A DNA stretch of 64,000 bases, taken from positions 1 to 64,000 of the forward strand of contig NIVC01002349.1 in NCBI GenBank assembly GCA_002269645.1, given 5' to 3'. Position numbers and translations under genes: made by a program. Of this stretch, positions 10,001 to 52,205 are shown piece by piece (positions within the stretch are counted from its first letter, which is position 1; every line of letters starts with the position of its first letter). The DNA is from Macrostomum lignano (Eukaryota). Below the pieces are notes generated by a model that made no database searches, was not told the DNA's origin, and was given only the letters and a program-made list of their open reading frames with translations.

Positions 10001-13000
10001 ATTCCCCCCCCTACTTCTTCGCGCAGCTTACCGGAAAATCTAAGGCTGCATAGCATATTACAATTTGTATTTGGACAAAACTTTAGTAGGCTGCGTGCCC
10101 TTTGATTTCCCATTTGCACGAAGCTGTGAACTCTGATGGTTTGAATTACGCTATTGCGCTATTGCGTAATTCAAACGCGTGAATTTTTTAGCATTTCCAT
10201 TGCATCAGATAAGTAAATCCGTGTCTTATTTGTACAGTGGGGCTACAGACTCATCGGGAAGGCTTAAGTAGTTTATTGGGTTGAAGCTTCGCACATTCGC
10301 GATGGGAGTTTTAATAATTTTAGAATTGAACTCATTTGAAGGGCCATTGCACAATAATTTAACACCCGGTACAATTCCGGTGCCAGTCGAAATGCGTGCA
10401 AAGTGCTTGGTGTCGAAAGTTTTTTTTAGATTAACGTATTTCAGCTATCACTCAATAGAATGAGCAGCGATTGTGCATCATTATATACGCTCGTACTCGC
10501 ATATGCTGTTGCTATCCATGTATTGCGTAAAACATCGGAATGCATTTGTATTTGAAATGATAGCTAAATGTCTCCGTTAGGCAACTCCTCTCCCTCACAT
10601 CTCATCCTCTCACGCCATCACTCATCAGTCTTCTTTCCTTTCCAAGACCGATTGTAAATGATTTCAGAGCCTAAAATCAATTGCGTAATCACAGCAACTT
10701 TCATTAATACTCTACATACATCACTTTTGGCCCAATGATAAAAGTTTTTGTTTAACTTTCAGTTAGCAAGGTTTCTAATGGTTGGAAGATTTTTCCCAAA
10801 TGAAGACTTTGACGTGAAGAGTTAAATACATTAGGTTATACGAGCTATATTCGAAAATTTTGAACCTGCAAATATCAGTCTTTTAATAGATTTTTTGAAA
10901 TCCATGGCAACACTAGCTATAGTAAAAAATATTCTAGCCGTAACAGGCAACCCATTGCCGGTGAAGGATGATCAGAAGCATAGAGCAGGCAAATCCTACA
11001 TCTGCCCATGACTCGGTCGAGATCACACAATCGAGGCTCAGCCAGCACGACCAAAGGAAGCACATGGCAAGCAAAGTGCAAAAAATAATCGACGATTCCA
11101 AATTTCCCATTGACGAGTTGGAGCCGGTTATCGATGTCATTTGTGCATTAGCGATCGTAGCGCACACGCAAGTGAAGTCTGGTATCCCAAACCAAAAAGG
11201 CTCTCAGCAGTGCCGCTTTCGCTGGTGTTTGGCGGGGCACCAAGGAGGCCGGTCAACGCGCACATCCGCCGCCTGCACAAGGAGGACCGAGAGGCCGAGA
11301 TTGAGACTAAGGTCCTGGAAGCGGAGCAGCGTGTCGCCAACGAGGCAGCCGATGCAGGACAGCTGGCGACAAAAAAAACTGTTCCGAATGTCATAATCGT
11401 GCTTTGCGAGTATCTTAGGGACTTTGACCGGTGGCCTGCTAGCTCAGCTCCTTGCTCCTTGCTCTGGGGCGGAATACATTTCTGCCCAATATGCTAGTCG
11501 GTACAGCAGTTGCCGATTTTGATGGCATCTTTTGGGCACTGATTTTGAGTTAAAAATAATATTTTTGCATATTTTTTCATAAAGCAGTTGCTTAGCATTC
11601 CAGTCCCTTGAAAATCTAATCAATATTCACTTATCCCAAGGCAGTTAACTTAGCTGATTGGTTTGGATTTAGTGGTGTTTAAAAAACAGAAATTGAAGCG
11701 GCTCATCACCACTGGATCTCAGTAGAGAGCCAAGACAGTCCCGAAAAATCCTGTCAGACAAACTTGTCTCAAAAACACAAATAGGAGTCTAAGCGGAGTG
11801 TAAAGCATTATAACAGTATTTATGAGATCTTAGTGTCTGATATAAGTTTCTCAAGTAGGCTCATCCTAGCCGACGTTGCTGATCAGTTAAACAGCTGCTG
11901 GACACAAAGTTGCAGAATATTTATTCCTTATAAATGAGTAGCTCGAAAGTCTTCATATGATTGTTCAGTGTTAGCACGGTTCCCGAGTTGTTGTTGTTGT
12001 TGTTAATTCCCGGCCGGGTTAATATCCGGGGGGCGGGTTTGCGCCCCTACCGCCTGGAGGAAGTGCAGTGCGCGCGGGCCGTCGTCGTGGAGGATGGCCA
12101 GCGTCGGGTTCTCGCCCAGAATTTGTCGTCTGGTCTCGGTCGTGGCGCGACATTCCAGGAGCAGGTGTTTGAGGTCCTCCGGGGCCTCCCCGCAGGCCGG
12201 GCAGGTGGCCTCCGGTTCCAGCCCGATGCGGTGCCGATACTGTCGAAGTATCGGGCAGTGGCCAGAGCGTAGTTGGGCTAGCAGGACTCTGTCCTTACGG
12301 TTCATGGAGGTTTGCTGTTTGGGTCGTCGGCCGTTGGTGCAGGAGCGGTGGATGCTGCAGTGCTCGTTTGTCTCATACGATCGGATGAAGTCGTTGTGGG
12401 CCGTCGCCAGAATGGCAGAGCGTGCGCTGCGGTGATCCAGGGGTGCGTTGGTCTGATCAAGGGTGGCAGCAGCGCGGGCAGTGGCATCGGCGAGATCGTT
12501 GCGACGAAGGTCGCAGTGGCCCGGGACCCATTGCAGGGTCACGTGATGGCCAGGCGGGAGGCGTCCCAAGATGCGCAGTATGTCGCGGCAACAAGGGGAG
12601 AGCCGCGGGCTTGGGCCGCCTTTGAGGCAGCGGAGCAGGGCCTGGGAGTCGGTCGCGCAGCGCAGCTCGCGGTTTCCCGGCCACGGCAGTGCGTCAAAAG
12701 CTGCTTGGAGGCCGAGCCTAAGCGCGCATTCTTCCGCACGGAAGGACGAGGTCAGGCTCCCCGCCGGAGCTCTCAGAAAGCGCGTCGACGAACCGCGGGT
12801 GTAGAGGACAGCTCCTGCTCCGCCGTTGGTGGTCCCCCTGCTGCCGACCCGTCCGTCCAGAGTTCAAGGTCAGCGGGGGGGGAGCGACGCTAGGGTCTCG
12901 AGCGCCGCGGCCCTGCGAACATGCGGTGGGTCGTCGCGTGAGCACTTAACTATGAGGGCGTCTTGGATGTGAAAGCTGGTCGAGGATGACCACGGAGGCA

Positions 13001-16000
13001 CCAGCTCGTTGTCGGTTTCGATTTGGAGCTCAGCCAGTCCGGCTCTGTGGGTCAGCTTTCTGGCACACCTGCGCCAACATCTGCGGAAGTTGCCGTTTCC
13101 GCCGTGAGCGCGGATGCTAGGAGTGACTTCTCTGTCGGCGATGTTGCGGAGCGAGGTGGCTTGGCGTTGGCGGAGCGTTTTGTCCAGGAGCGTCGCTGCC
13201 GCGGCCGCCGCACTGTGAGACAGGGGTTGGAGTCCGGCTTCGATAAGGAGCGCGTCTGTTGGCGTAGATTTGCAGCATCCTGAGATGACACGGGCAGCCT
13301 CGTTGTGGGCAGATTCCACCAGTTGTCTGCAGGCGTCCGACGCGAAGTTAAACCAGGCTGCCGCGCCGTGAAGAGCAGCCGACTCAGCGTAGGTTCTGTA
13401 GAGTTGCGACAGGAGCCCAGGGTCCTGGCCCCAGTCACGCCCGGCTAGGCAGCGGAGAGCGTTGGTCCTCTTTTGGAGGTTTTGTTTTTGTACCGACGCA
13501 TGGTGCCGGAACGTGAGCTGGGAGTCGAGGTGCACGCCCAGGAGTCTTGGGTGAGGTTCGAACGGGGCCTGGACGTCGCCGAGCCTGATATTCGGTCTCG
13601 CTTTGCCATTTACCTCACGGGGATCGAGGGAGAAGAAGGAAACGACCGACTTGGACTTGTTGAGGTCCACCTTCCAGGTTTGGGACCAGGTAACAAGCCA
13701 ATCGGCCGCTCTCTGCAGTCTCGACTCGCACTCTTTGAGGTTGTGGCCTTGGGCGCCGAAGGTGGTGTCGTCGGCGTAACCGACCGCCAGGACGTCTTCG
13801 GGGGCGTCGTCGAGCAGGTCGTCGATGTACACGTCCCAGAGCGTCGGGGCGAGAACGGATCCTTGCGGTAGGCCCTCGGTGAAGATTCGGACGCGGCTGC
13901 GGACCCCGTCCCAGGTGACGAGGGCGCGGCGGTCGTTGATGAAGTTTTTAATCCACCGGTTCATACACGTGGGCGTCCCTTTTCTGTTTAGCTTGGCAAT
14001 TTGGGCTTTACGCCACACGCGCTCGTACGCTCTGGAGAAGTCAGCTAAGAGTAGGGCGGTCCGCTTCGCTGGTTTCTGAGCTTGGAAGCCGTCGAAGATG
14101 TATTGGGTGACCGCCGTAATCTGCTCCTCAGTGGAGCGGTTCCGGCGGAATCCAGCTTGGGCTGCATTTAGCAGTTTATTCTCTTCCAGATGAAAGGCGA
14201 GGCGTTCGTTAACGAGCCGCTCGGCGATTTTAGCAGTACAAGAGAGAAGGCAGATAGGGCGGAAACTCGCCGTGATGCTGTGATCTTTTCCGGGTTTGGG
14301 GATCGGTCGAATGTCGCCCAGACGCCACGCAGCCGGGACTTCAGCGGTACGCCAGGAGATGTTGATGGCAAGCAGCATTCCCGAGTCGTAAAGGTAGTAG
14401 AATATGCCATCATCTTTGACGTCAGAGTACATCTTGTAGATTCCGTTCGGGTTGATGGCCGCGCAGTGTCCATACCACCAGCCAGCTGACTTCTCAGCAG
14501 CGCAGCTGCCATAAAAGTGCGCGTCATTGTCATATTCGGGCGTGCTGAACTGGTGATTATTTGGCAAAAAGAGTGCTTCAGTTCGCTGTCCGACGCTTGA
14601 CCTGCTCGCGTCCAGTGGTCCCATCAAGCACCTGTACTTATCGGTCACTGGCCCAACAGAGAACGGAGCATTCTCAGCCCAGTACCAATTGCCGTTGAAG
14701 TCACTGAACTCCCAGCGGACTCTCCACACTCCAGTGGCGGTGAGCTGGTGGAGCTGCTCCAGTCCCATCCAGTAGTTGAGTCTCTCGCCCTGACCGAATC
14801 CATTCATGTAGTCCCCCCAGTTTCGGTTGAAGCTGACGGAGCCGTCGACTCTGTGCTGGAACGTCGTCCAGCAAGCGCCCAACGGCTCCTTGAACTGAAA
14901 TTAACAAGAGATGAAGTTCGCGCATGAGAACTCTGTTACAGCTAGACAGTATCCTGATCACTGAGCTGTGCTACTCACCCACAGCTTCGCCAGGCCAGGA
15001 TCTCCCTCGTGCCGGCACTTTCGACAGGCGTCCTTGCTGCCTCGGTGGCACATCAGCAGGGTGCAGTCACCCGACTCAGCGCTGAATGAGACAGCGTGAG
15101 CAGCTTCGGCCCTGCTCAGACAGTGGATCTTGCTGGCACTCTTGAACACTCGCAGTACCCTGTACTCAGAGATGTCACTAGACTGCAGCTTCCAATTCGA
15201 GAGAGAATTGGAAGAGTCAGCTGGTTCAGCAATCACAGTTAAGGCGATTGCAAACACCCAACAGGCAAATCGCATGTTGGGACTCATTCTGGGGTTTTAT
15301 TGTTGACTGTCAGAGCTCGATTGGGCGTCAATATCGAGAGAATACCAATATAGAGATCTTATGAGCCGTGTTCGCACCTCGAAAGCGATTTTCCCCCGCT
15401 AAACTGACTTGTATTTATACACAGCAAATAAATCAATGCCAGCTTTGACTGAAAGCTTTTCATTGTGAATCTGAATGGCCCAATGTGTCGCATTGTAGCC
15501 CCCCCCCCCGACAAAGGCTTTTAAACTGGGACCGATTGCTTCATTTGTCTTTTTCTGCTCTGCCGCGCTTGTAAATTTCTGAAAAAGAAATGTTTGCGCC
15601 ACTGACGAGGCCGTGGAGATGCTAGGCTATTATGAAAAATTGCTCATCCACGAGGCGTTTGAAGCTGCGATGCTTTGAATTCGATTTTCAGCTCCCCGAC
15701 AGGCAGTAGTTCCAGCTCATTAGCTGTTTAGATTGAAGCTCCATTGTTGAGCTGAATTGTGCAGTTCTGCTATTGCCTTCTTTAAGGCTCTCACAATAAC
15801 AGGATTAAGCTCTTTTTAAATAGGGCTCGACACCGTTTGCTGTTAGATAGGAGCAGTCCAAGGATCTGGGAGGGTGGCAGGTGGAGCAGCCAGAGGAGCT
15901 GGGAGGGTGGCGGGTGGAGCAGCCAGAGGAGCTAGGAGGGTGGCGGGTGGAGCAGCCAGAGTAGCTGGGAGGGTGGCGGGTGGAGCAGCCCGAGGATCTG

Positions 16001-19000
16001 GGAGGGTGGCGGGTGGAGCAGCCAGAGGATCTGGGAGGGTGGCGGGTGGAGCAGCCAGAGTAGCTGGGAGGGTGGCGGGTGGAGCAGCCAGAGGATCTGG
16101 GAGGGTGGCGGGTGGGTCAGCCAGAGGATTTGGGAGGGTGGCGGGGGATCAGCCAGAGGATCTGGGACGGTGGCGGGGGGGGACCAGCCAGAGGATCTGG
16201 GAGATCATTAAATATTGAGCAAGACTAATTGAGTAACCAATCGAGCATTTTTACATTTTTCCCCAACCAAATGTAGCAAGCGACCGAGCGAGATCTCAGT
16301 TTCATTGTACAAGCTTTTACTGCAGTTAGTTGCTAACAACTTTTTAATTGTAATCCAGTGTAAGAAATGTACTTGAACAATAAATGATCCACGCTACGCA
16401 CTACAAGGCCGAGTAATCCAATTAAAAAATAAAAAATGGAGTTGATATTTTGTATTAAAAGCAACAGACTAGCTGTTGAAATAAAAAATTTATACCAACC
16501 GAATTTGAACGAAATGTAGGCTGGAGGCTTGGGCCTTTTCTCTCTTGCTCGCTATGAACACGCACTGGATTTGGGTTTTTCAAGTTTTCCTGTTTTCCTG
16601 CAATCTTTAATTTTCAATAATATCTTTTTGAGCACTTTTGAGTCTGAGGCAGTCTGCAGTCAGCAAAACAGAATGAAGATGCCAATTTAATAGATCTGCT
16701 TTTAGAAATTCAGAGACTTAATCATTATCGATTCATTATCTTGTAAATAAATGACTCTTTTTAACTTTCCCATTATATAGACGAAAACGCTAATTTTGCT
16801 ACTGAAAAAGAGTAGATAAGCAAGTTTTTATAGTTTAAACATCGGCGAGTATCTGTGTCATAGGTGCCAGAGTGTGTGCCATGAATGCCAAATTGTCATG
16901 ACTAACGAGTATTAGAGGTCAAAAAAGTGATGTACAGTATTTGTAGTTCACCCAGCTGTAAAATGGGTGCCAGTATTAGCTGTGATAATTGAGTGTGTGG
17001 CGACCCCCTCCCCCCCCCCCCCGAATTCTTGGACTGAACAGCCGTACGCAGCTTTCAATCTATTATTATTATTATTATTTTATTAGTCATAGGTTGAAGC
17101 TGGGAGCGATATCAAATCAAAAGTTAGAGGCTGATTCCTAGAAATGTGCATATTTATCAAGAATTACTAGCGTATGTACTTTAGAATTGCCTGCAGCTTA
17201 CCATTGCCAATGTCAATAAGTACATCATTAGCTCGCTGCGTGATGTCGCACTGTGTTTCAATTTTCTGTTCATCAGATAGTCCGTCAACTTTGTGTATGA
17301 ACACTTCGAATTTAATCTTTGGATTAACCGAGTAGGCGCCGCTAACGAGAACTTTCAGCCGATCAATAGCGTCAATGTATTCGTCTTGAGCGTCGATAAC
17401 GAATACAATAGCGCCAGTGCTGGAGAATGTGTCGTTGGCATCGAACACGTCGTTCATGTAGTCAATGTGGCCCGGCACGTCCCATACGGAGAACTGGATA
17501 AATGAGCAGTCGGACACCTCTGCGGGAATTTAGACAGAGTGGACTCATATGAGACCGCTTGCTCACCTGCTACACGCAACTCTATCTGCGACTGTCTAAA
17601 GCTCGCTCATCTGAGATCCAATCCATCTACCTCAAAGGCCAGATAGGGAATTTAGCCCTTGTCTGTGGGCCAGATGAGAGTTTTATTTTATTAGAGGTAG
17701 GGGGGTTGTGTGCACCCTGGCGCACTTTAAGCGACATCAACGCACAACCGGCAAGAGGCATTACTGCCCATTCCGCCGACTCCCCTGAGCAGGCATACAA
17801 GCGCGCGGATACGTACGCAGGCACACAATCACACAGGAGTGTACAGCGGCCCTAACTTTATATTATCGTTAGGCATGTACACTTCACTGCGCCTTGGGGG
17901 GTTGGCTCTCAAGGCCGTTAATTGCACGAGCAGAGCCAAGCCGAGATTCCAATTCAGCTCTAAATTAATGTGACTGCACTTGGAATCGAGCCTGGGTCGC
18001 TGGCACACCAGAGCCTGCGCTAGACCGCTGGGCTACGGCCCCCCTGCCAGATGAGAGTGGAAAGGAAAGGGAATGGAAGACAAAAGATGAGAAAAGAGAG
18101 GAGAGGCAGGAAATGGTATGAGAGAAAAGATAAAAGAGGAGAGAAGAGGGGAGAGAGGGAAAAGAAAAAGAGAAGGGCGAGGGGAGAGGGGAAGAGAAGG
18201 GAGAGGGGAGAGAAGAGAGAGAGGATAAAAAGCTGAGCAGAGACACAAACCTTGAGCGGGCCGGATTGCCATTGTGAAGTTTCAAAGGACCTGAGTTCGC
18301 CGACCCTTAATTTGATACTTAGAGTTCTTTCCATTCACTCACCATCTTTCTGAATTTTGCAAGTGCTCTCGAGAAACAGCGTCTCATTGGGGCTCATCTT
18401 GTGGAACACCACTTTTTGGATAGAAGATTTGCCGCTCCGCCTCATTCCCATAACTAGAATGCGCGGCTTCTCGTCCGCGGCTGCCGACGCGCCGGCGACA
18501 CCGCTACTGGACGACATGGCGCCGACACCGACTCCGTTGACGGAGGCGACACCAGCCTGCGTTGCAGTTACGAAATTTAAGTGGGAATACAACATTAATC
18601 AAGGCAAAGATTTAATATCATAAAAATAGATGATCTATTTACACAACCGAATGTGGGATCTATCTCTACACAACCAAATGTGGGATCTATCTACACAACC
18701 GAATGTGGGATCTATCTCTACACAACCAAATGTGGGATCTATCTACACAACCGAATGTGGGATCTATCTCTACACAACCGAATGTGGGATCTATCTCTAC
18801 ACAACCGAATGTGGGATCTATCTCTACACAACCGAATGTGGGATCTATCTACACAACCGAATGTGGGATCTATCTCTACACAACCGAATGTAGGATCTAT
18901 CTCTACACAACCGAATGTGGGAAATGTGGAATCTATCTACACTATCAAATGCGGGATCTATCTGCACAATCGAATGTGGGATCTATCTATACAACCGAAT

Positions 19001-20720: not shown

Positions 20721-23700
20721 TTAAGATTTATAAATATTGTTAATAGCCCGACCAATAACTAGGCGTCGAACCTCGGACGTGCCGGCGCCAATTTCGTACA
20801 GTTTAGCGTCGCGCAGCAGCCGGCCAGCCGGGTATTCGTTAATATAGCCGTTGCCGCCCAGGATTTGAATGGCGTCCAGGGCCGACTGAGTGGCATCTTC
20901 GGCGCATTTCAGTATCACTCCGGCGCAGTCCATAGGCTGTCGCGAGCCCTGAGATGGAGATAATAGGTTTCGAAGGAAGTATTAGAAGGGCCGGTCTATC
21001 CGGCCCTCCGGTCCTTTGAAACTTCGCAATAGCAATCCGGCCCGCTCAAGGTTTCTGTCTCTTTTACAGATACTCGTACTAAAATAACTAAAAAAATAGT
21101 TATTCTAGTATCCATGGTCTCTTCCCAACCCTCATTTTTCTCTCCTCTTCTCTCATCTCCCTCTTGTCACCTCTCCTCTCTTTTTTCTCTCTCTCCTATC
21201 ACCTCTCGTCTCGTGGACACTGTGGTGAGCCACCAACACCCTGCTCTGTAGACACTACAGTGAGACGCCTACACCCCCTCTGTGGACACTGCGGTAAACC
21301 GCCTGCATCCCCTCTGTGGACACTGCGGTAAACCGCCTACACCCCCTCTGTGGACACTGCGGTAAGCCGCCTACACCCCCTCTGTGGACACTGCGGTAAG
21401 CCGCCTACACCCCCTCTGTGGACACTGCGGTAAACCGCCTACACCCCCTCTGTGGACACTGCAGTGAGCCGCCTACACCTTATCCGTAACCCCCTGATCT
21501 CCATAGGTTTTACTTGCCTACCCAAAAGGTTCTACTGTTGACAATATGTAGAGTGAAGCCCACCAATAACTAAACTGTAAATATATATATACATATAACA
21601 GGTCACAGGTGTAAACACACACAGCCACTCACCTGAGCCAGAGCCCTAGCAACAGAATAAACGTAGCACCGACCACTAGTCAATCGGCAATACATATCGG
21701 CCATTTTTCCTTGCAACAATTGAAACTGCCCAATAGACTGGCCAAACGCTTTGCGAATGTGGGCATATTGGAATGCGGTATCGCAGGCGGCCTGCATAAT
21801 ACCCAACGGCCCGGCAGACAATAGCAGCCGTTCAATGTCCAGGCCAGACATCAGCACGTACACGCCACCGTCTAGGCGGCCCATGACCCGATCAGCCGGC
21901 ACTCGAACTCCGTCGAATACCAATTCGCCCGTGTTGCTACCCCGCATGCCAAGTTTGTCCAGCTTGCGAGAACAACTGAAACCGGGCGAGTCTCGCTCTA
22001 CTAGAAATGTTGTTATACCGTGCGCCCCAGCCTCCGGTTTAGTCTTGGCGTACACCACTATTACATCCGCGTCTGGACCGTTGGTGATCCAAAATTTGCT
22101 GCCATTCAGCACGTAGGAGCCGTCAGACTGACAAAGAGATATTTTCGAAAAAAATCATCACTGAAGATACCTTTTAGTCTGAATATTTAGCTCTTGTTGC
22201 TGAGTAGCCACTGCCTAATACTGGCTTCAAGACTCTTTGCTGAGTAGCCAATGCCTAATATTGGCTTCAAGACTCTTTGCTGAGTAGCCAATGCCTAATA
22301 CTGGCTTCAAGACTCTTGTTGCTGAGTAGCCACTGCCTAATACTGGCTTCAAGACTCTTGTTGCTGAGTAGCCACTGCCTAATACTGGCTTCAAGACTCT
22401 TGTTGCTGAGTAGCCACTGCCTAATACTGGCTTCAAGACTCTTGTTGCTGAGTAGCCACTGCCTAATACTGGCTTCAAGGCTCTTGTTGCTGAGTAGCCA
22501 CTGCCTAATACTGGCTTCAAGACTCTTGTTGCTGAGTAGCCACTGCCTAATACTGGCTTCAAGACTCTTGTTGCTGAGTAGCCACTGCCTAATACTGGCT
22601 TCAAGACTCTTGTTGCTGAGTAGCCACTGCCTAATACTGGCTTCAAGACTCTTGTTGCTGAGTAGCCACTGCCTAATACTGGCTTCAAGACTCTTGTTGC
22701 TGAGTAGCCACTGCCTAATACTGGCTTCAAGGCTCTTGTTGCTGAGTAGCCACTGCCTAATACTGGCTTCAAGACTCTTGTTGCTGAGTAGCCACTGCCT
22801 AATACTGGCTTCAAGACTCTTGTTGCTGAGTAGCCACTGCCTAATACTGGCTTCAAGACTCTTTGCTGAGATATCGTGTGGATTCATTACTTTATCTTTT
22901 TTTAAACTTTATAAACCCTAATAAACGGAAATTCCCCAGAGTAAATAAAGTTAGTATCGCCTTTATTACCTGCTTGTCGGCGCGCATAGTCATCGACACA
23001 ACGTCGGACCCGGCATTTGGTTCCGACATTGCTAGCGCGCCAATCCATTCGCCGCTAATTAATTTCGGCAGGTAACGGCTCTTCTGCTCGTCGGTGCCGT
23101 GTCGGACAATCTGATTGACGCACAGGTTAGAATGGGCTCCGTAGCTTAGGGCCACTGCGGCGCAGGCCCGGGACATCTCCTCCATTACGATGGCGTGATC
23201 CAGGTATGAGGCGCCCAGGCCACCGTACTCCGCTGGGGAAATTCCATGGTAAAGGTGGTGATTCTTTATGAGAGGGTAGGGATTCTTGATGGGAGGGTAG
23301 GGATCTTTGATGGGAGGGTAGGGATCTTTGATGGGAGGGTAAGGATCTTTTATGGGAGGGTAAGGATCTTTGATGGGAGGGTATGGATCTTTGATGGCAG
23401 GGTAGAGAATTTCAATTGGAGGCTGGAGTGGGGGGGAGGATTGACTGGAGGCGAAGATCGTTGGTTTTTTCAGAGAGATACTTCGTCTTAATTAGTGATT
23501 AGAAGCCCCCTAATCGAAGTGGGAAATGGAGGCCTTTTGCAAAAATTATAAAACTTACTGATTTAGTTTTGCCCAGTATCAAAATGTATACTCGTAAATA
23601 CATATGTATTTATTGAGCTCATATAAATAGATTATTATCATACTTACTAGGCGCTGTAACACCAAGAAGTCCAAGTTCTCCACACTGCCTCCAGAACTTC

Positions 23701-31601: not shown

Positions 31602-33234
31602 ATGCTGGTTGAAATGTATTTGTACTTTGAATTCACTGACACTGTGAAAAACCTTCTGTTCAAGGGCTGGAATGCATCAACACCATCAGGTGAGAATAAC
31701 ATTTTGTTGCTTGATTTTTCCTAGTTTGTCAGCTTAGTGCGGTAGATTGTGAAGTTTTTTGATATTCCTATTTACTACTTAGAATGTCTAGCACTGAAGT
31801 ACTACTAGCACTGGGGCTAATTGTCGTCTCAAAGAGTGAGTTCTCCAATAGTCAGTTAAAACAAAATTATACAAAATGTGCAAAATATGTAGATGCGCGA
31901 TATTCAAAGAAATACACCCTTTCACAATAGCTTACAGGTGACTGCGGACCAGAGGGGAGAGAGGGGAGGGAAGAGAAAAGAGAGAGTAGAAAGGAGAGCA
32001 GGGGTGTCGCCACCCGGCGAAGACAGGGGGGACATGTCCCCCTCCCAGTAAAAGCTATGGGGTGGACATGCCAATGCTTTACCCCCCCCCCCACACAAAC
32101 ACAACCTTGTGACCCGTTATGAAAATCAATAATTTTGCTTCAGGGTGACAAAATATAGCGCCTGTGGCACCAAAATGAGTGCCTGAGACGCTAAAATAAC
32201 TGCCCGAGGCGCTAAAATAACTGCCCGAGGCGCTAAAATGTGCCTGCAGCACCAAAATGAGTGCCCGAGGCGCTAAAATGAGTGCTTGCGGCGCTAAAAT
32301 GAGTGTCTGGGGCGCTAAAATGAGTGCTTGCGGCGCTAAAATGAGTGTCTGAGGCGCTAAAATGAGTGCCTGCAGCGCTAAAATGAGTGCCTGCGGCGCT
32401 AAAATGAGTGCCTGCGGCACCAAAATGAGTGCCTGCTGCGCTAAAATAAGTGCCTGCGGCGCTAAAATGAGTGCCTGCGGCGCTAAAATAAGTTCCTGCT
32501 GCGCTAAAATAAGTGCCTGCGGCGCTAAAATGAGTGCCTGCGGCGCCGAAATGAGTACCCGAGGTGCTAAAATGAGTGCCTGCGGCGCCAAAATGAGTGC
32601 CCGAGGCGCTAAAATGAGTGCCTGCGGCGCCGAATGAGCGCTGATAATACCGATTCTGAAAATAATGTACATCTACATGTACAATTTTTGACTTGGCCCC
32701 CCCCCACCATAAAATCCATGGCGACGCTCCTGAAGGAGAGGGGGGAAAGTGAGAACAGACGAAATTGGAGAGGAGAGAAGAGAGGAGACAACAGAGAAGA
32801 GAGCTGAGCAGAGACAAGCCTTGAGCGGCCCGGATTGCTATTGTGAAGTTTCGAAGGACCCGAGGTCCGGAACGGATCGAGAGGCTTCGCGGGCTTCTAC
32901 TTATAGTGGCATGCAGCCAATCTATGCAACACTACAGTGTGCTCTAATCCTACTTGATGCACTCCGCAGACTGGCCTACGCGACAATGTCAAGCGCAGTG
33001 TACACAGTCCGGGTACTGATCTCCATGCTGCTAATGTTGGCTGTGATGACCTACAATGCGTGGATTTTCCTGTCAGTCGTGCTTGGCAGCGCTGTCGGCT
33101 ACTTTTTGTCCCCGTTGGCGCGTCGGGCATTTCGCCCCTGCATTGCCGCCACCTTCTCCACTGCCGCTGCGGATGATGCAGCTGTTGACGTATTCACCAC
33201 CTCTGCCAGCTCTGCGCATGAGCTCAATGACTGA
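31602..33234 (+). CDS. Copper transporter, CTR/SLC31 family, ~140 aa
   Basis: Exon 31602-31689 MLVEMYLYFEFTDTVKNLLFKGW (donor G|gtgaga, phase 1). Last exon 32907-33234 with ISMLLMLAVMTYNAW (MxxxM) and LGSAVGYF (GxxxG). The phases do not join directly; a candidate micro-exon lies at 31931-31937. The true start may be upstream. Confidence 0.75.
31999..32732. mobile_element. hAT-superfamily MITE carrying a 21-bp minisatellite
   Basis: TIRs CAGGGGTGTCGCCA (31999-32012) and TGGCGACGCTCCTG (32719-32732), 12/14 match. 8-bp TSD aaggagag at 31991-31998 and 32733-32740. Confidence 0.85.
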
Positions 33235-49156: not shown

Positions 49157-52100
49157 TCTCCATCTGAAAAGATAGATGATGGCCCGGCCAGCACCAGCAT
49201 CAGTCAATGCGGTCATTTATATTGGCAATTCCTCATTAGCCCAGCCTACTACAGATCCTAAATATTATAGTCAATGAATGAACTCAACTTACTCAACAGG
49301 TACAGTATAGGGAGGCCTATTCAGCCAGAATGAATATCTGAGCCTTGAGCTGACAGGCCTGCAGGCCCCGCCATCTCCCCCCCTTCGGTCCCTATCAATC
49401 AATCGGTCCCCAGGTCCACAATTCCCCCCCCCCCAGTCACTCCCGAGCAGCGATATAAATAATGGGAGCATGATTGAGAAAGCCGTGTCAGTGGGGGGAG
49501 GCAAGCCCAACTTTATGCATGACGTGCATGAGGGGGAGGCAGGGAGGGGGCCCCGACCCCTCCGGCTTTGATTTATCGCTGCCCGCCTCCCCGACTCAAG
49601 CCGTCATGAGCTCTGATGAATGAGGTCTCCCAGCCTCCGCTTCTGGACTGGACTTTGCGACCTCAGCCTTATTTTAGCGACTAGGGACTTGGGAAATGAT
49701 CCGCGTTGAAAGCCTGAAGCGGTTTAGTCTGCCAAGTTAGAAATTGTTCACTTCCCTTGGTAGCTAGCAACACCTGGAACAGGGTCATCTTCTCTGCTCT
49801 AGTGGAACAGGGGTCCTTTGAAACTTCACAATAGCAATGCCAAGTTTTTTGTCTCTTCTCAGCTCTCTTCTCTCCTCTCTCTTCTCTCCTCTCTCCTCTC
49901 TTCTCTCTTCTCTCTCCTATTTCCCGTCTCCTCTCTCCTCTCTCTTCTCTTTTCTCTATTCTCTCTTCTCTCCTCTCTATTCTCTCTTCTCTCCTCTCTA
50001 TTCTCTCTTCTCTCCTCTCTATTCTCTCTTCTCTCCTCTCTATTTTCTCTTCTCTCCTCTCTATTCTCTCTTCTCTCCTCTCTATTCTCTCTTCTCTCCT
50101 CTCTATTCTCTCCTCTCTCCTCTCTTCTCTCTTCTCTCTCCTCTTTCCCGTCTCCTCTCTCCTCTCTCTTCTCTTCTCTCTATTCTCTCTTCTCTCCTCT
50201 CTATTCTCTCTTCTCTCCTCTCTATTCTCTCTTCTCTCCTCTCTCCTCTCTCTTCTCTTTTCTCTATTCTCTCTTCTCTCCTCTCTATTCTCTCTTCTCT
50301 CCTCTCTATTCTCTCTTCTCTCCTCTCTATTCTCTCTTCTCTCCTCTCTATTCTCTCTTCTCTCCTCTCTATTCTCTCTTCTCTCCTCTCTCCTCTCTCT
50401 TCTCTTTTCTCTATTCTCTCTTCTCTCCTCTCTATTCTCTCTTCTCTCCTCTCTATTCTCTTTTCTCTCCTCTCTATTCTCTCTTCTCTCCTCTCTATTC
50501 TCTCTTCTCTCCTCTCTCCTATCTCCGTCTCCTCTCTCCTCTCATCTAATCTCTCCTCTCCCTTTATCTCTCATCCCATCACTCATCTAGTCTTTCCTCT
50601 CATCTCTTCTCTATTCGCTCTCCTTTTCTCTCTGTCATCTGGCCCGCAGCCATGAGCTGGATTCTTTATCCGGCCCTTTGAGGTAAAAAAAAAAATTCCG
50701 ACCCCTTGATCTCTACTTTCAATTTGATTTTTCTGCCTTTAACAAAAGCAGCAACTCTTCTGTCTCTTCACATTGTGGAAACGCGGCGCCGTCTGTCCCG
50801 CTGCAAATTTGGGGGGGGGGTTAAAGTGGCGAAAGAGGAAGATTGGTTTCTATTCCTGTGTCCGACTTCTGCAGTGCCTCATCACCACTCTCAGTGTGCT
50901 TGAGAGTACTTGAGAGCAGCGGCCGGGTCCTCGAGAAAAGTGAAATAAATTTCTCTAGCCAAACTCCAGAACTGGGCAGAGCTGAGAACGGCGGGGAAAA
51001 TGAAAGAAACAAATTGATTTATTATTATTATTATTACAATACTATTACAGACCGACCCAAAGCAGAGTCCGCTCGCTCTGCTGGTGAAGACCTGCGACAG
51101 CATCGGCTCGGGCTCAGAGCATCACTCGGCTGCAACAACTGGCGCCAGCAGCGGCGCCTCCCGCTCCACCAGCCGTCGCTCCGCTGGAAGCCGGCCGCCG
51201 TCGGCGACCAACGCAGTCGATGCCGGAGCCCCGCCACCGCTGAAGCGGCCCGCCAGTCCCGCCAGCCGCGGCGGCTTCGGGCAGCCTCGCCCGGCTAAGC
51301 AGCGCTCGCCGCAGTCGCCGCCACCGCCGCTGCCGCCACCCCCGCCTCCGCCCCAATCGAATCCGTTGAAGTCAGCTGAGTCGCCGACTTCGGCTTCATC
51401 GGCTGCGGCGATCGCGGCGGCGATGGCGGCTGCCGCAGCTGCAGTTGCCGGAGGCGGCCCGCACCAGCAGCAGCAACAGCAGCATGCCTCTCCGCCGCTC
51501 TCCTATCCGCCGATGTTCCCGCCTTTCCACCATCATCAGCCGCATCATCAGCAGCATCTGGCCACCTGGGGACTCGGCGCTGTGCCCGAAGGCCACTCGG
51601 CCGCCGTCTGCACCTGTCCGCACTGCGTCCACGCCCGGGCCCTGGTGGACTATCTCTACGCCTCGGCGGCGGCGGCCGCGGCAGCCTCAGCTGCGGCCGA
51701 AACCAGCACCGCGTTAACGACAACCAGCAGCAGCAGCAGCAGCAGCTCCGGCCAGCAGCAGCAGCGCCGCCAGCATTCGTCCCCGGCGCCGCAGACTCCC
51801 CAGGCCGAGTTCTGCATCTTCTGCGGCCGGCACTGCCCGACCCCCGAGCAGCTGGTGCGGCACATGCGCTCGCACGAGTCGTCCTCGTTCGCGACGTCGG
51901 TTGCGTCGGCGCCGCCAGCAGCTCCGCAGCTCAGCCCGTTCAGCGGGCCGCCGTCTCCGCCACAGATGCCGACTTTGCCAACTTCGTCGTCGCATCATAA
52001 CGCGACGCTGGCTTACGCGGCCGCTGCCGCCGCCGCCGCAGCAATGCAGCAGCCGCATCAGCAGCACCAGCAGCTGGAGTCGATGCGCAAGTGGGCGGCA

Positions 52101-52205
52101 GCGGCGGCGGCGGCAGCGGCGGGCCCGGATCAGCGCTACCAGCCCTACCGCAGCCTTCTCGGCCGCCTGCAGTTCCCTCATTTCGGGGCGGCGCCCCTGG
52201 TCTGA
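47260..52205 (+). CDS. NET-family (NocA/Elbow/Tlp-1; ZNF503/ZNF703-like) zinc-finger transcription factor, 2 exons, ~428 aa
   Basis: Exon 1 47260-47391 ends QYLHPDFLEAPSCL|gtgagt. Exon 2 51051-52205 starts TDPKQSPLALLVKTCDSIG (Sp motif) and contains a CTCPHC btd-like box, a single C2H2 finger CIFCGRHCPTPEQLVRHMRSH, poly-Ala runs and C-terminal RYQPY. Confidence 0.85.
47690..48124. repeat. 45-bp minisatellite in the NET intron
   Basis: Unit gttgaatcgatgtgtctatggtccaacttgtagccagagttaatc. Confidence 0.95.
49078..49152. repeat. (GA)n microsatellite
   Basis: Perfect GA run. Confidence 0.95.
49808..50705 (+). mobile_element. Family 1 non-autonomous element with ~800-bp CT-rich interior
   Basis: Starts caggggtcctttgaaacttcacaatagcaat and ends ggcccgcagccatgagctggattc..ccctttgaggtaaaa..ccgacccct; the termini aggggtc/gacccct are inverted. 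Confidence 0.6.

Follow-up and report, generated by a model that had tools for sequence, protein, structure and literature searches.

An RNase H-type LINE fragment inserted in frame into a FReD lectin gene of Macrostomum lignano, probably a young insertional mutation

Long interspersed elements (LINEs) truncated at their 5' end are known to insert into coding exons, as in human L1 disease alleles, and the non-long-terminal-repeat (non-LTR) retrotransposons that bear an RNase H domain comprise the groups I, Nimb, Ingi, Tad1, LOA and R1, with the Drosophila I factor ending in a (TAA)n tail. Here we analysed a 64,000-nt stretch of the genome of the flatworm Macrostomum lignano (contig NIVC01002349.1, positions 1 to 64,000; hereafter the window), in which a LINE fragment interrupts a two-exon gene for a lectin with a fibrinogen-related domain (FReD), and the FReD reading frame runs on into the LINE reverse transcriptase (RT). 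All features of this locus lie on the minus strand, and coordinates are window positions. We consider it very probable that a 5'-truncated LINE of the RNase H group inserted into the last coding exon of this secreted lectin gene at a recent date, and that the lectin copy was lost or impaired; the locus represents an ordinary insertional mutation and not a new kind of protein.

The insertion is delimited by two exact copies of the 9-bp sequence ACTCGGGAA, the FReD-to-LINE junction lying at 14378/14377 with the frame continuing. Direct repeats of nine bases are frequent by chance (40 repeat families within the 4.1-kb region), and a 9-mer duplication alone proves nothing; its position is decisive. 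The 5' copy ends where FReD homology stops and LINE homology begins, and the 3' copy stands after a pure (AAC)6 tail, at the point where FReD homology resumes; because both copies sit exactly at the homology breakpoints, the duplication goes beyond chance. Excising positions 14377-11980, that is, the LINE and one duplicate, restored an open reading frame (ORF) of 294 aa that is colinear to its stop with the intact M. lignano paralogs P0001 and P0002; in an empty allele ..TACGACTCGGGAA would be joined directly to CCGTGCTAAC... The restored last 19 residues aligned without gaps to the C-termini of P0001, P0002 and P0005 (..SMKTFECLIFN), and no long direct repeats (LTRs) flank the element. The 9-bp duplication, the (AAC)n tail and the displacement of about 19 FReD residues had all been proposed in an earlier reading of this DNA (hereafter the original prediction), and each was recovered here.

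The lectin gene consists of two exons with its ATG at 15287. The same prediction had joined a signal-peptide exon to the FReD exon in phase 0, and this splice is supported, because the intron position is homologous in the paralog P0001 (locus L001), whose sole intron lies at the same codon boundary and in the same phase, after ..LW. The N-terminus shows a basic residue, a 14-residue hydrophobic core (residues 7-20) and a V-I-A/E site, which fits a signal peptide, and the lectin is predicted to be secreted. As had been stated, the spliced chimeric frame passes from the FReD into an RT with its YADD motif and stays open for 777 aa, to the TGA at 12872-12870, with the LINE contributing 502 codons. 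In this chimeric frame the conserved last 19 FReD residues (..MKTFE..), which are kept in every paralog, are replaced by LINE sequence.

The LINE itself is much richer in GC than its surroundings, its 62% comparing with 46% for the window and 54% for the FReD exons of the host. Its domain content assigns it to an RNase H-bearing group. It is colinear with the RT- and RNase H-bearing proteins P0007, P0008 and P0017, and colinearity with the ORF2 proteins P0008 and P0017 (RT, RNase H and a CCHC motif) holds throughout except for a 45-nt shifted stretch. The nearest proteins are LINE ORF2s of arthropods, a barnacle among them, and of metagenomes; the nearest full-length relatives are 36-43% identical to the LINE, and the source names 'BS' and 'jockey' carried by RT matches are automatic labels and not a clade placement. 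ORF1 and the APE endonuclease are absent from the window copy. In metagenome fragments with 59-63% identity (P0010, P0013 and P0016), about 200 further residues precede the position at which the LINE begins in the window, the contig of P0010 (L002, a 59%-identical relative) carries an APE-like ORF (..ILQLNLSGL..DVACVQETNL..) upstream of the RT, and more distant matches carry PF03372/PF14529. Because relatives carry an APE-like ORF upstream of the RT, the window copy is 5'-truncated about 25 codons before the RT domain, which agrees with the cut just before the RT that had been predicted. At the other end there is essentially no 3' untranslated region (UTR), the LINE stop codon TAA running straight into the (AAC)n tail. 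An AATAAA at 14180 and an ATTAAA at 13952 lie on the sense strand inside the RT region, and these hexamers could lead to early polyadenylation of FReD transcripts that read through into the LINE. An Rfam scan of the window gave no match.

Downstream of the RT, two 1-bp indels in homopolymers put RNase H and the CCHC motif out of frame as the sequence is written, and the chimeric ORF holds the RT only. Correcting both indels gave a conceptual product of 1066 aa, so that the two lengths of the original prediction, 777 aa as written and 1066 aa as corrected, were reproduced. Its description of a complete RT-RNase H-zinc knuckle held in part: all three elements are present, but only the RT belongs to the ORF. 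The RNase_H match is barely above its gathering score (26.4 bits vs a cut-off of 25.8), the first catalytic Asp (DLELWTDGS) falls in the shifted-frame stretch, and the entire domain lies downstream of the chimeric-frame stop. The CCHC motif (CX2CX8HX4C) is readable directly from the translation, but it is better called a LINE ORF2 C-terminal CCHC motif than a zinc knuckle. After correction there is no in-frame LINE stop across about 790 codons, and this uninterrupted ORF fits low divergence. Widespread homopolymer error was considered as the cause of the indels; three exons of an isovaleryl-CoA dehydrogenase (IVD) gene elsewhere in the window (about 900 nt) are free of frameshifts, which opposes it only weakly. 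The features of the locus are collected in Table 1.

Table 1. Features of the interrupted lectin gene and of the inserted LINE, in the order of transcription.
Feature	Position	Strand	Details
FReD gene exon 1	14979..15287	-	309 nt, 103 codons; start codon, signal-peptide-like N-terminus, Cys-rich module (..CRKCRH..)
Intron	14895..14978	-	84 nt, GTGAGT...TTTCAG, phase 0
Exon 2, FReD-coding part up to the insertion point, 5' duplicate included	14378..14894	-	Fibrinogen_C 1.4e-34; 84% nucleotide identity to M. lignano paralogs
Target-site duplication, 5' copy ACTCGGGAA	14378..14386	-	exact 9 bp
5'-truncated non-LTR retrotransposon (LINE)	11989..14377	-	2389 bp; sole copy in window
Reverse transcriptase RVT_1, in frame with FReD	13638..14303	-	3.7e-33; residues 26-247 of LINE ORF; YADD 13778-13767
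C8 homopolymer (12882-12875) and TGA (12872-12870)	12870..12882	-	one C extra relative to homologs; TGA ends the 777-aa frame
RNase H domain	12465..12874	-	RNase_H 8.8e-6, RVT_3 6.8e-4
G5 homopolymer	12834..12838	-	one G missing; original frame regained 45 nt after the first indel
LINE ORF2 C-terminal CCHC region	12135..12281	-	zf-RVT 5e-4, below gathering score (21.1 vs 27.5 bits)
(AAC)6 3' tail	11987..12004	-	begins inside LINE stop TAA (12005-12003); last AC overlaps first two bases of 3' duplicate
Target-site duplication, 3' copy ACTCGGGAA	11980..11988	-	exact 9 bp
Displaced native FReD gene end	11920..11979	-	last 19 codons; stop TAA 11923-11921; AATAAA 11925-11920 overlaps stop; tblastn match of tail

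The protein restored by excision is a recognizable FReD lectin. Fibrinogen_C was matched by Pfam at residues 109-275 (profile positions 40-207 of 221, 1.4e-34, 120.3 bits vs a cut-off of 22), and a PDB search with the lectin part returned ficolins 1-3 as the closest solved structures (1e-27; Ficolin-2, 1.4e-27); a structure model of the restored FReD, built on a 7-sequence alignment, had a mean predicted local distance difference test score (pLDDT) of 45, too low for the fold to be judged from it. Both the DxD motif for Ca binding and the P-subdomain Cys pair are retained. The N-terminal A subdomain (profile positions 1-39) was not matched, the Pfam and PDB alignments beginning at about residue 106-109. 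Because the absence of a canonical A subdomain is common to all Macrostomum paralogs aligned, it is a subfamily trait and not damage. In place of the first ~40 FReD profile positions stands a lineage-specific Cys-rich module, seen only in Macrostomum proteins, and the module of exon 1 aligned with P0001, P0004 and P0005. The original prediction had called this exon PAN-like, a description we do not retain: neither the exon-1 module nor three paralogous modules had a Pfam match at E≤10. The window thus displays the native layout of a Macrostomum-specific FReD subfamily, namely a signal peptide, a Cys-rich module and a FReD without the canonical A subdomain.

Matches to this subfamily came from M. 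lignano only, with 63-68% amino-acid identity and about 84% nucleotide identity in exon 2. Against P0001, the ratio of nonsynonymous to synonymous substitution rates (dN/dS) was 0.28 (exon 2, 0.27), which indicates that the FReD family evolves under purifying selection, a family-level value that is silent on the time since the insertion. Besides FReD coding sequence, in which nucleotide identity was 83-84%, the loci of P0001 (L001) and P0002 (L005) shared with the window only a 21-bp minisatellite; because no synteny was found between the window and these two M. lignano loci, they are either paralogous or too diverged. The subfamily also occurs in M. lignano as tandem fragments (L001:8615-8871) and as multi-FReD proteins, with two FReDs in P0003 and four in the 1365 aa of P0313.

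The anatomy of the locus supports target-primed insertion. A LINE endonuclease, acting in trans or supplied by a full-length source copy, would have nicked the bottom strand at the target, (AAC)n-tailed RNA would have been reverse transcribed from the nick, synthesis or joining would have halted about 25 codons before the RT domain, and staggered second-strand cleavage would have produced the 9-bp duplication. Sense orientation and the FReD reading frame would have been reached by chance (1 in 6), and because the prior is 1/6, no selection is needed for an in-frame sense fusion. Since the LINE is otherwise without in-frame stops and is bounded by a pure tail and a perfect duplication, the insertion is probably young. 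As annotated, the frame would encode the signal peptide, the N-terminal module, the FReD minus its last 19 residues, and the RT, stopping at 777 aa. Solved FReD structures such as fibrinogen gamma-C show the terminal segment returning as a strand to the central sheet. In the fusion, this conserved C-terminal FReD strand would be replaced by about 500 RT residues, which would enter the endoplasmic reticulum. The fusion itself is presumably without function and its RT is probably inactive; we take the locus most probably to be a young allele, null or hypomorphic. The original prediction of a recent knockout allele that fell in frame by a 1-in-6 chance is accordingly kept, the duplication being exact, the tail pure and the gene restored on excision.

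Some observations weigh against so simple an account. The chimeric frame is open through the whole RT, and through RNase H and the CCHC motif as well if the indels are assembly errors, and a translated fusion protein is therefore possible; furthermore, no second copy of the LINE was found in the window, in protein collections (above about 63% identity) or in the JGI metagenomes, which yielded only a 32%-identical LINE relative. One could go further and suppose a domesticated or neofunctionalised secreted lectin-RT protein kept by selection, for example for a part in diversification or nucleic-acid handling in immunity, an outcome that we regard as extremely improbable even though the element lies in sense and in frame, YADD and the other RT motifs are preserved, the ORF extends over 777 aa without a stop, and the transcript would retain the native promoter and signal peptide and, with its stop in the last exon, would not be expected to undergo exon-junction-dependent nonsense-mediated decay. 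Bearing on this are two word-indexed protein searches and one exhaustive search of 1.84 billion cluster representatives. The FReD search returned 6 proteins, all with a FReD only, and no FReD was found among the 120 matches listed by the RT search. For the exhaustive search the query was the contiguous exon-2 ORF (FReD and RT), in which residue 173 marks the junction; the RT alignments mostly started at the junction or a few residues from it (query 167-184), the exceptions being fragments starting inside the RT and a few alignments that reached across the junction into upstream sequence, at most to query 147. On local re-scanning, none of the best 150 of the 1.84 billion representatives matched both halves. 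When the chimera, the restored FReD and eight ORF variants were looked up as exact sequences, the protein collection gave no match, and no report of FReD-RT fusions was found in the literature.

No two-domain protein appeared in any search run, whether among the 6 FReD proteins, the 120 listed RT matches or the best 150 representatives. Domestication is further opposed by the intact duplication and pure tail, which point to a very recent event and not to an old maintained gene, by RNase H and the CCHC motif being out of frame, by removal of the terminal FReD segment that all paralogs keep, and by the internal AATAAA/ATTAAA hexamers, which could truncate sense transcripts; behind a signal peptide, moreover, the RT would be separated from cytosolic and nuclear templates. 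The suggestion that the locus is raw material for an RT-lectin domestication finds no support, as no FReD-plus-RT protein was found in these searches, RNase H and the CCHC motif lie out of frame and the C-terminal strand is lost. Extremely improbable too is the stronger version, in which both indels come from assembly error and selection retains a 1066-aa secreted FReD-RT-RNase H-CCHC protein expressed from the locus, a nascent lectin-reverse-transcriptase host gene. Were the fusion to prove both expressed and conserved, it would count as an unusual case of RT domestication; nothing found points that way.

That the LINE was misjoined into the FReD locus, or that the contig is collapsed or chimeric, also appears very unlikely. 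The genome is exceedingly rich in repeats, tandem repeats covering 29% of the window, and the two homopolymer indels resemble long-read consensus errors, but a misjoin would not make an exact 9-bp target duplication at both ends, the two halves of the FReD exon flank the LINE in order, orientation and frame, and the conserved IVD exons elsewhere in the window are without frameshifts. A variant that shares the insertion event itself deserves more weight, although we hold it to be the less probable outcome: the gene copy may already have been redundant, making the insertion an effectively neutral, possibly fixed pseudogenisation and not a polymorphic knockout with a phenotype. Several FReD paralogs of the subfamily exist in M. 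lignano, including tandem and multi-FReD forms (P0001-P0005, P0313), and large duplicated blocks have been described in its genome (PMC5730564). Against this, stops and frameshifts are absent from the FReD coding sequence apart from the insertion, and its DxD motif and Cys pair are kept; because the coding sequence is otherwise intact, there is no sign of decay before the insertion.

The remainder of the window is dominated by repeats and carries a few other coding segments. Tandem repeats make up 28.8% of positions 1-64000 (81 Tandem Repeats Finder (TRF) rows), mostly minisatellites with periods of 11-51 bp in arrays of up to 1.7 kb, a content that fits the repeat-rich Macrostomum genome (PMC5730564). 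The 21-bp minisatellite GCCTGCGGCGCTAAAATGAGT occupies 32160-32630 and recurs with 80-84% identity on M. lignano contig NIVC01000178 (L005:12786-13132), and a 33-bp minisatellite (10.7 copies, 91% matches) at 15850-16203 precedes the FReD start codon by about 560 bp. On the opposite strand, beyond the 3' end of the FReD gene, ORFs of 142 and 118 aa overlap in different frames at 10968-11497 (+); they are without Pfam match and may belong to a frameshifted or spliced gene. The IVD gene at 20727-23137 (-) has three exons (22115-21642, 20951-20727 and 23137-22952) that are 64-76% identical to animal IVD, with minisatellite-filled introns between them; for one conserved exon the best match reached only 73%, and the top of the list was not a flatworm. 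An ORF at 32749-33231 (+) contains a Ctr copper-transporter domain (Pfam 3.5e-15), and one at 51084-52205 (+) encodes 373 aa of low-complexity, Ala/Gln/Pro/Ser-rich sequence with one weak C2H2-type zinc-finger match (E 0.009), which may be a transcription-factor exon.

These results are of use chiefly for annotation: at this locus a gene predictor would give a 777-aa 'FReD-reverse transcriptase', and such an entry needs a flag marking it as an allele of a 294-aa lectin gene disrupted by a transposon. As a clean filled-site marker, the insertion can serve population or haplotype genotyping. It also points to recent activity, in a macrostomid-like flatworm, of a LINE family that is GC-rich, bears an RNase H and ends in an (AAC)n tail.

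Compared with known systems, the native lectin resembles invertebrate FReD lectins (ficolin-like and tachylectin-5-like proteins and the fibrinogen-related proteins (FREPs) of snails) in its predicted secretion and in a C-terminal FReD with the DxD motif and Cys pair. It differs from snail FREPs, which are somatically diversified and carry one or two immunoglobulin superfamily (IgSF) domains N-terminal of the FReD, in having no IgSF domain, Fibrinogen_C being the only domain detected by Pfam in the 294-aa native protein, and from ficolins in having no collagen stalk. The LINE shares with I-type and other RNase H-bearing elements the order (APE)-RT-RNase H-CCHC and a trinucleotide-repeat tail in place of poly(A), whereas the window copy is without ORF1 and APE, has essentially no 3' UTR, and has full-length relatives that are only 36-43% identical. 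The event as a whole is closest to exonic L1 insertions, with which it shares the hallmarks of target-primed reverse transcription, 5' truncation, a simple-repeat or A-rich tail, a short duplication and a disrupted host ORF. The element in the window, however, is not an L1; it has an RNase H and, in the place of poly(A), an (AAC)n tail, and it differs further in lying in sense and in frame, with the host ORF running on through 502 LINE codons and not ending immediately.

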